Source: Lepidodermella squamata (Eukaryota > Animalia > Gastrotricha). Taken from it: a stretch of 64,000 nucleotides of DNA. Below the pieces are notes generated by a model. It was given only the letters and a program-made list of their open reading frames with translations, did not search any database and was not told where the DNA came from. The DNA lies in the NCBI GenBank assembly GCA_047495785.1, contig JBLDXI010000042.1, positions 2,046,001-2,110,000 of the forward strand, read 5' to 3'. Shown piece after piece: positions 10,860 to 12,280 of this stretch; the first letter of the stretch is position 1; each line of letters opens with the position of its first letter. A program made the translations under genes and the position numbers.

Positions 10860-12280
10860 ATGTTTCTATTTATGAACTTCTTCATCGCATGCTTCCTCCT
10901 ACGTAATATTCAATGCGTTGCAACTGAAGATCTTTTGAATTACGAATCTGCCAATGACACTTCATTGGATGCGTTGTTCTACCGTTTCATTGGTTATCAA
11001 TTTCTATCAGGCTACATGGATCACAACTCCACATGCTATTCTGATTGGCTTGGGTATGCGAAGAATGACTGCGAAATACCTCTACCCCCGGAGAAAGCAG
11101 TAAGCTTATTTATCTAAATGATGCGAAATCATAAATTCCGTAATTTCTAGCGATACCTTGCTAGCTTACTTCTACAATGCTTGGAAAAAGAGAAGGAATT
11201 GCCGCCAAACAAATGCGCTCAGAAGTCGTTGGCTAATACTGGCTTTCGAGAATGCATAGGAAATCTGACGGATAATGACTTTGATAATTTCTGCGTGTTC
11301 TATTTTACTGTTACGCCGATTTGCCACTACCTATTAACAGGAAATATATCAGTGCCTGAGCAAGTCGCCATTCAATTCAGGGAAATGGTTATTCGGGCGG
11401 AATCAGCCCAGAAAAAAGCAGGCGAGTATTTGGAAGAATTGCTACGCTCTTCTGTGCCATTTCGAGCTGTAGCCGCCCATTTCTTGCCGTATCAAAGTTT
11501 ATCGACTGATTTTAAGGTTTGTTTCACTTTCCAGTAAACCTTTACTCAATGATTTAAGCATACATCAGCAGGACTGGGAGTTTCTGCCTTACCTTATTCT
11601 GCTGCCAATTGTCCTCTTCAAGAAGGATCGATTTAGATTTTTCTTATTATGCCTATTAACGGAAACTGCCGAATATTTGATTTTCACCAGTTGGTACGGC
11701 TGGATTGTGGTAAATTTGAAAAGCTTAACATTGATTTAACAAGCTATCAAAACGTAATCCACAGGACAAATTTTGGATTCGACAAAACGTCGTGGCTATT
11801 TCGACCCGCGTCTATTTCCTGTTATCTTACCTTAAGGAACAGGATTTGGTCGCATTCGCATACGAAATTATTTGGCGATCGATTGCATTGTTCAGCAGTT
11901 TCAAATTCAGTGGTAGAACTGGCACGGTGCATGTCATTCGTACTGGTGTCTCAGAAGCGAAACAAACGGATGCCAGAGCTGCGAATTCGGATTTAAGTCT
12001 CAGCAATCGCTTCGTTAGCGGAATGTCCAACGGACCACGTGCTCCATCTGAGACTGCTATGCTTACCACTCCGACGAGTCAGGCTTTTTCGCCTCCATAC
12101 GTTATTACAAATCACGAGCTCGCAATACCTGACAAACCAGCCGTCGCTTTGCGACAACCAATTCAAGATGCTAGAGCTGTACCGCCCATCAACGCTCCAG
12201 CTTATTACAACATAACGCCGCCCACGCCAAGAGCGAGAAGAGCCAGACAGAAATCAACGCGTTCCGGAAACGAGTACTGA
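10860..12280 (+). CDS. Transposon cargo ORF3: GEX1/Kar5/Brambleberry-like nuclear-envelope fusion protein, ~420 aa; exons 10860-11099, 11151-11516, 11569-11709, 11765-12280
   Basis: Three 51-55-nt phase-0 GT-AG introns give one open frame: signal peptide; NSTC-x11-C...RYLASLLLQC...C...CIGNLTDNDF...ICHYL; short helical stretch; 2-3 hydrophobic segments; Pro/Ser/Arg-rich tail. Confidence 0.75.

Follow-up and report, generated by a model that had tools for sequence, protein, structure and literature searches.

The locus studied here raises the question of whether a gene at positions 10860-12280 of a 64,000-nt stretch of Lepidodermella squamata DNA (contig JBLDXI010000042.1; the whole stretch analyzed is called the window below) belongs with Kar5, GEX1 and Brambleberry, and whether it travels inside a transposon. 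To our knowledge, no proteins but these are known to be required for the fusion of nuclear membranes, from yeast to plants and fish, and the mechanism by which they act is unsolved. A preliminary description of the locus had proposed a cargo gene resembling these factors, assembled from fragmented open reading frames (ORFs). The explanation that we favor, with a probability of roughly 45%, is that the gene encodes a divergent short form of the GEX1/Kar5/Brambleberry family and rides as a passenger in a 5.3-kb DNA transposon with terminal inverted repeats (TIRs), located at about 9445-14732.

The gene was read as four exons on the + strand, separated by three introns and adding up to 420 codons in summed exon length, as follows:

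10860..11099, + strand: exon 1, 80 codons with an ATG start; hydrophobic N-terminus (residues 1-22), conserved F-Y-R-x-x-G-Y, Cys 59 and Cys 71.
11100..11150, + strand: intron 1, 51 nt, GT..AG, phase 0.
11151..11516, + strand: exon 2, 122 codons; Cys 90, 102, 115 and 138, also the non-conserved Cys 128, then a helical linker of ~55 residues.
11517..11568, + strand: intron 2, 52 nt, GT..AG, phase 0.
11569..11709, + strand: exon 3, 47 codons; hydrophobic segments at exon residues 2-19 and 24-39.
11710..11764, + strand: intron 3, 55 nt, GT..AG, phase 0, read from splice signals and open frame only.
11765..12280, + strand: exon 4, 171 codons plus stop; hydrophobic segments at exon residues 9-23 and 28-43, then an A/P/R/S/T-rich tail of ~116 residues.

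Each of the four exons is an open frame, and none of the six splice sites departs from the canonical signals or from phase. Residue numbers of the 420-residue product were obtained by arithmetic on exon lengths, and database queries were made exon by exon. Two of the three introns (1 and 2) are backed by relatives of the gene. These relatives are short proteins from ORF fragments, six in number (P0001-P0006), and lie on seven contigs (L001-L007) from metagenomes or read archives. The position of intron 1 is common to the genes on L001, L004, L005, L006 and L007, while on L003 the open frame is uninterrupted over the window's exon 1/2 junction, with no intron there, and on L002 a single open frame (P0002) runs through the window's exon 2/3 junction. 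For intron 3 and exon 4 there is no backing from relatives; they were recognized by the GT..AG signals, the intron size and the open frame of 171 codons. The earlier proposal that the ORF pieces are spliced through three junctions into one 420-residue protein is therefore borne out by the exon and intron reading and, for introns 1 and 2, by the relatives.

The relatives were found with exon 2 alone. When 1.84 billion representative proteins were searched exhaustively with phmmer, only three matches came back, all of them short unnamed ORF fragments, and a profile built from these added three more; no full-length annotated protein is among the relatives, and the family is nameless in every source record. 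A scan of metagenome contigs with the family profile was empty. In the alignment, all six cysteines are kept in every relative, together with P, F, F-D, C-x-Y and P, and the window keeps every family-invariant residue of the cysteine domain. As exon 2 by itself retrieves relatives with invariant C, P, C, F, C, FD, C.Y and P, the gene is real beyond chance, and both the gene model at 10860-12280 and the pattern in its product are confirmed. Moreover, synonymous sites are saturated among the L001-type relatives while nonsynonymous divergence (dN) is 0.1-0.4, which indicates that the family is under purifying selection.

The most characteristic part of the product is one domain:

10965..11345, + strand: six-cysteine helical domain, similar to a cysteine-rich domain (CRD), crossing intron 1; the AlphaFold2 (AF2) model of relative P0003 is all-helical.

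Its cysteine spacing is C-x11-C-x18-C-x11-C-x12-C, then x22 to the cysteine of ICHYL with one extra non-conserved cysteine between, and the x18 interval spans the exon 1/2 junction; reading exons 1 and 2 directly reproduced the spacing of the preliminary description exactly. In the relatives, the spacing is 11/12-18-12/13-11/12-22/23, and their N-terminal F-F-W-K-x-G-E-x-Y-V motif aligns with L-F-Y-R-F-I-G-Y-Q-F of the window. The AF2 model of P0003, made with the family as alignment, has a confidently predicted, all-helical domain with block-mean predicted local distance difference test (pLDDT) values of 70-93. The database entry of P0003 (L003:199-699) reads an in-frame TGA as Trp and, as the surrounding stretch is probably an intron, the N-terminal 40 residues of this entry and of its model are untrustworthy.

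Around the cysteine domain, hydropathy by exon agrees with what had been described before, namely a signal-peptide-like start, a short helix, C-terminal hydrophobic stretches and a tail. Residues 1-22 are hydrophobic, with Kyte-Doolittle values of up to 2.0 (hydropathy only), and resemble a signal peptide; the exon-b pieces of L001, L004, L005 and L006 likewise begin with a hydrophobic leader. From the sixth cysteine to the first hydrophobic segment there are ~55 residues with one short helix, and ~30 residues lie between the sixth cysteine and the membrane segments in the L001-type relatives. Four hydrophobic segments follow in hydropathy, two in exon 3 and two in exon 4, whose number and topology as membrane segments are uncertain; the hydrophobic stretches include FLPYLILLPIVLF, RFRFFLLCLL.. 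and FWIR..VYFLLSYL.

Published work defines the Kar5/GEX1/Brambleberry family by four features, namely a signal peptide, an N-terminal CRD with six invariant cysteines, coiled coils (one to three) and C-terminal membrane segments (two or three) (PMC4291462, PMC7586128, PMC10609895). Like Kar5p/Tht1 (PF04163), the window protein has a putative N-terminal signal peptide, C-terminal membrane segments and six cysteines at near-identical residue numbers (59, 71, 90, 102, 115 and 138, versus 56, 68, 91, 105, 116 and 141 in Kar5; PMC4291462), and, as in Kar5, most of the protein is predicted to be lumenal. The successive spacings are 11-18-11-12-22 in the window, 11-22-13-10-24 in Kar5 and 11-19-12-8-22 in plant GEX1 (supplement of PMC7586128). 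GEX1, known from plants, Chlamydomonas and Plasmodium, is also alike in having C-terminal membrane segments (three in GEX1) followed by a C-terminal tail, in its spacing (against 11-18-11/12-11/12-22 here), and in the motifs that flank the cysteines, which were compared by eye and are unscored. The animal members of the family are Brambleberry and its paralogue zeat1 of zebrafish (karyomere and pronuclear fusion).

As read off the printed alignment, the GEX1 motifs are S-C-W-(Q/H)-x-A-Y at Cys1, (R)-L-A-W-x-L-S-x-C at Cys3, C-F-x-K-x-S-G-R-P-x-F-P-x-C for Cys3-Cys4, and Y-L-E-F-F-L-E-x-N-x-I-C-(H/Q)-x-L at Cys6. The counterparts in the relatives are P-C-W-K-N-I-F, Q-L-A-M-E-L-L-x-C, C-Y-C-K-E-K-Q-L-P-P-V-K-N-C and F-D-N-F-M-L-F-F-G-Q-I-E-P-I-C-Q-Y-F, and those in the window are R-Y-L-A-S-L-L-L-Q-C, C-L-E-K-E-K-E-L-P-P-N-K-C and F-D-N-F-C-V-F-Y-F-T-V-T-P-I-C-H-Y-L. 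Common to GEX1 and the new family are C-W after Cys1, L-A-x-x-L-x-x-C before Cys3, F-(M/F)-L ... I-C-(Q/H) at Cys6, and a proline as the eighth residue of the Cys3-Cys4 loop.

Several results weigh against this kinship. The likeness to GEX1, being read by eye off a printed alignment, carries no score. Pfam Tht1 (PF04163) was absent for every exon and every relative at E up to 10; two profile searches, one of them at E up to 10, retrieved no named protein; and the phmmer search of exon 2 against the 1.84 billion representatives gave no named family member. Among PDB sequences, exon 2 and the family profile retrieved nothing relevant, only chance matches of the S100-A4 type, and Foldseek of the P0003 CRD model against the PDB found no relevant fold (best E 0.4). 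In addition, hhalign gave no real match between window exons 3 and 4 and the membrane block of the L001-type relatives. Lastly, the coiled-coil region of 250-300 residues found in Kar5 and GEX1 is absent from the window product. The membership test by sequence was weakened by the exon-by-exon queries and by the length limit of the word-based search. Furthermore, family members are so divergent that BLASTP fails even among fungi (PMC5720818), and for that reason the blank family searches are weak evidence. A viral glycoprotein, an Izumo-type bundle or another solved fold is not indicated either, since nothing below E 0.3 was obtained when the CRD model was compared by Foldseek with the PDB and with predicted viral structures.

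The coiled coil is where the product departs most from the known members. In Kar5, ~300 residues that include two essential coiled coils (186-215 and 401-436) separate the CRD from the membrane (PMC4291462), whereas the window protein has ~55 residues there; GEX1 has two or three coiled coils and ~590 residues. Kar5 also differs in having two membrane segments, against three or four and a tail of ~116 residues in the window protein, which in addition has no Pfam Tht1 match. The preliminary description had called the coiled coil much shorter than usual, but with one short helix in ~55 residues the region is missing altogether. Lacking this defining feature, the window protein is a short form, and is not filed as a plain family member. 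The likeness to GEX1, Kar5 and Brambleberry proposed earlier stands for the architecture and the cysteine spacing, while no profile, sequence or fold search gave the family. Altogether, we lean towards shared ancestry of the cysteine domain with Kar5, GEX1 and Brambleberry.

The alternative that survives best, which we nevertheless consider rather unlikely, is a lineage-restricted family of cysteine-rich, multi-pass membrane proteins with no Kar5/GEX1/Brambleberry ancestry, serving some other role in the secretory pathway, in which the spacing and the helical fold would be convergent or coincidental. Every search for the named family by sequence, profile or fold being blank is in agreement with such a family, as are the lack of a coiled-coil region, the four hydrophobic segments instead of two or three, and the fact that among 1.84 billion representatives it was seen only in a handful of unnamed contigs. 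However, blank searches are expected for the Kar5/GEX1/Brambleberry family, and convergence would have to account for five successive spacings and absolute cysteine positions that fit two distant members, for flanking motifs that recur, and for a domain order (signal peptide, CRD, helix, C-terminal membrane segments) that is the family's own.

As for the second half of our favored explanation, that the short form is the passenger of a transposon, the following features surround the gene:

9445..9485, + strand: left TIR, 41 nt, with an exact 22-mer core at 9447-9468.
9969..10812, + strand: small ORFs with membrane segments, upstream in the same element, ending 47 nt before the start codon of the window gene.
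12537..14591, - strand: DUF7869-family gene (PF25273), tail-to-tail with the window gene; similarity to relatives starts at 14396.
14692..14732, - strand: right TIR, 41 nt, with an exact 22-mer core at 14709-14730.
38938..38959, - strand: third, solo TIR core with one mismatch and no partner in the window.

The two TIRs are 90% identical over 41 nt and face each other 5.2 kb apart, and the 22-mer core is exact at both ends, with 0 occurrences expected by chance. TA adjoins the core on both sides, and may be part of the repeat or a target duplication; the solo copy has AA there. No match to the TIR core was found in the metagenome contigs. As the inverted ends enclose a DDE-like gene, two small membrane ORFs and the window gene, we read the locus as a TIR element with passengers, and a densely packed one, with 256 nt between the stop codons of the window gene and the DUF7869 gene on the opposite strand. 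A Pfam scan of the small ORFs at 9969-10812 gave no family; they may be a second passenger. The view of the window gene as cargo is supported by where it lies, namely between the TIRs of an element in which a DDE-like protein is encoded as well.

The element's own enzyme is likely to be the DUF7869 protein. Its relatives are unnamed proteins of 500-590 residues in beetles, a planthopper, a fish and metagenomes, against which the window's gene keeps one reading frame throughout, with two in-frame stops and no frameshift. Both stops sit in an 18-codon stretch that is missing from three relatives and whose length fits the introns of this genome; we therefore take it for a probable short intron, and the gene for probably intact. 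For the 347-residue ORF at the C-terminal end of the protein, the AlphaFold2 model, with a predicted template modelling score (pTM) of 0.80, has the beta-beta-beta-alpha-beta-alpha-beta-alpha order of ribonuclease H (RNase H), and Foldseek matched it to the IstA, Mu and TnsB transposases and to integrase catalytic cores (E 6e-5 to 1e-3). The modeled fold points to a likely DDE-type transposase; an invariant G-H-x3-E-x-D-S-x-H motif is also present in the protein. Moreover, on an unrelated metagenome contig (L008:4708-8002), the gene of a relative of this protein (P0010), with a DUF7869 and an OTU-like part, is flanked by inverted ends of its own, 33 nt long and with subterminal repeats, in an element without extra genes of the window-gene kind. 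From this case, a so far undescribed group of TIR transposons seems to use DUF7869 proteins as its enzymes.

The whole is alike to gene-carrying TIR DNA transposons, e.g., those of the Pack-MULE type of capture, in that inverted ends surround a DDE-like gene and intron-bearing passengers. Unlike in Pack-MULE-type elements, the enzyme comes from the uncharacterized DUF7869 family, and the passenger is a complete and apparently intact gene, not a fragment. A longer inverted repeat in the flanking region, at 4373-5871 and 20425-21453, was also considered as the element boundary and was ruled out, as a third fragment at 26572-26871 lies in the wrong order and shows the repeat to be dispersed. Its copies are 1-1.5 kb long, inverted and 81-98% identical, and carry a GTCC-type microsatellite.

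In three of the relatives, the homologue has a different neighbor, as it lies tail-to-tail with a Tc1/mariner-like gene (helix-turn-helix (HTH)/DUF4817):

L001:7371-10025: homologue and Tc1/mariner-like pair, the latter an intact 352-residue ORF.
L004:3984-6560: the same pair, with an intact 352-residue ORF.
L005:617-3141: the same pair, with a 243-residue ORF.

The linkage of the pair has been held though silent sites are saturated, with dN of 0.1-0.4 for both genes. No inverted ends were found around the gene pair in L001, L004 or L005, which rules out the L001-type pair as a TIR element; it may represent either a domesticated transposase or a unit of long-standing linkage. The window's DUF7869 gene was considered as the equivalent of the 352-residue neighbor in L001, L004 and L005, and this was ruled out as well, the two being unrelated and the neighbor Tc1/mariner-like. 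The short-form gene adjoins transposase-type genes of two unrelated superfamilies (DUF7869 and Tc1/mariner-like). In zebrafish, zeat1 (the bmb paralogue) has a Tc1-type element in its 3' untranslated region (UTR) (PMC12006353), and this recalls, perhaps by coincidence, the Tc1/mariner-like gene that lies immediately 3' of the homologue on L001, L004 and L005. The arrangement in zeat1 is that of a host gene with a transposable element inside, whereas the window gene is a gene inside a transposable element.

A second alternative, which we regard as unlikely, denies that the gene is cargo and takes it for a host gene, Kar5/Bmb-like or unrelated, with inverted ends that come from separate copies or from an old dead element. 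The solo TIR core at 38.9 kb speaks for this, and so does the crowding of the region with other repeats, including those at 4373-5871, 20425-21453 and 26572-26871. The window gene is also single-copy within the 64 kb, and the homologue in L001, L004 and L005 is stably inherited, under purifying selection and without TIRs around it. The passenger half of our explanation is open to doubt chiefly because there is one copy of the gene, because one TIR core shows that such ends can stand alone, and because repeats crowd the region. Nevertheless, the two ends have the 22-mer core in common without a mismatch, are 90% identical over 41 nt and face each other 5.2 kb apart around a gene with a DDE-like fold, which speaks against a host gene, as does the tight packing of the 5.3 kb, in which the neighbors of the window gene lie 47 nt and 256 nt away; in addition, a related DUF7869 gene is TIR-bounded elsewhere (L008). 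Overall, we consider it probable that the gene at 10860-12280 is cargo of a TIR element with a DDE-like enzyme.

That the gene is a captured passenger already out of use, i.e., an unexpressed or decaying copy whose open frame reflects recent history, is improbable: there is no close paralogue for a constraint test, and intron 3 and exon 4 are without backing from relatives, but the four exons are open, the six splice sites canonical and in phase, all family-invariant residues of the cysteine domain are kept, and the coil-less short form is also under purifying selection in the L001-type relatives. As these relatives keep the same form under such selection, the short form is not a truncation artefact of capture.

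Under our favored explanation of a divergent short family member carried by the element, the cleavable-looking N-terminus would place the compact, all-helical six-cysteine domain in the lumen of the endoplasmic reticulum (ER) or in the perinuclear lumen, where the six cysteines would probably form three disulfides. The helix of the ~55-residue linker would join this domain to a block of three or four membrane segments, with the disordered tail last, and the protein would reside in ER or nuclear-envelope membranes. If the protein behaves like its presumed kin, its cysteine domain would serve to bind partner proteins, or the protein itself, either along the lumen or across it, and the short form could not supply whatever the coiled coils do in Kar5. 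It may help, mimic or block the fusion of nuclear membranes, or have an unrelated role, and the earlier suggestion that the transposon uses or interferes with this process is conjecture. The enzyme of the element itself would be the DUF7869 protein with its RNase H-like fold. What the analysis shows is the gene model, the relatives, the cysteine pattern, the TIRs and the fold of the neighboring protein; a common ancestor with Kar5, GEX1 and Brambleberry, the lumenal topology, a place in the nuclear envelope and any part played in membrane fusion or for the element itself are inferred. A bolder version, in which a pared-down member of this ancient family, its CRD set almost directly against its membrane anchor, is working cargo that benefits the element through an action at the nuclear envelope of gametes, zygotes or cleavage-stage nuclei, and in which short forms are also linked to two transposase superfamilies, appears to us very improbable.

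If the kinship is true, a natural short form made of a cysteine domain and a membrane anchor would show which parts of these proteins can stand alone. The known range of the family in animals would also be widened; no homologue is known in several animal lineages, including C. elegans (PMC7041684). If the gene does travel in a transposon, the locus would represent a rare mobile element with a nuclear-envelope factor, and would bear on how such elements reach or exploit germline and zygotic nuclei. Should the likeness prove convergent, the gene would still belong to a new and selectively maintained family of cysteine-rich membrane proteins, so far seen only in unannotated eukaryotic contigs.

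The window has further features. Two ORFs for Thr/Cys-rich, secreted-looking proteins, at 31960-32340 (+) and 49134-49631 (-), are paralogous and have a common C-x-A-K-T-D-N-Q-C-A motif; a Pfam scan of the first of them (31960-32337, the only one of the two paralogues scanned) gave no family. Two PIF/Harbinger-type DDE_Tnp_4 ORFs lie at 308-1162 and 46523-47011, one nearly full length and the other a C-terminal piece. A second repeat family is present as direct and inverted copies at 17631-18584 and 24237-24612, with 81-91% identity. At 2521-3275 there is a tandem array with a 69-nt period, whose central 272-nt copies are 97-99% identical, and at 57176-57701 a hairpin with 172-nt arms (94%) and 32-nt tandem units at its edge. 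The host genes comprise exons of a two-pore-domain potassium channel at 39187-42198 (-), a PPDK_N / phosphoenolpyruvate (PEP)-synthase-like gene at 53886-54911 (+) and a trypsin-like protease at 56405-57010 (-), and from these potassium channel, PPDK_N and trypsin-like genes the window is recognizable as animal DNA with short introns.

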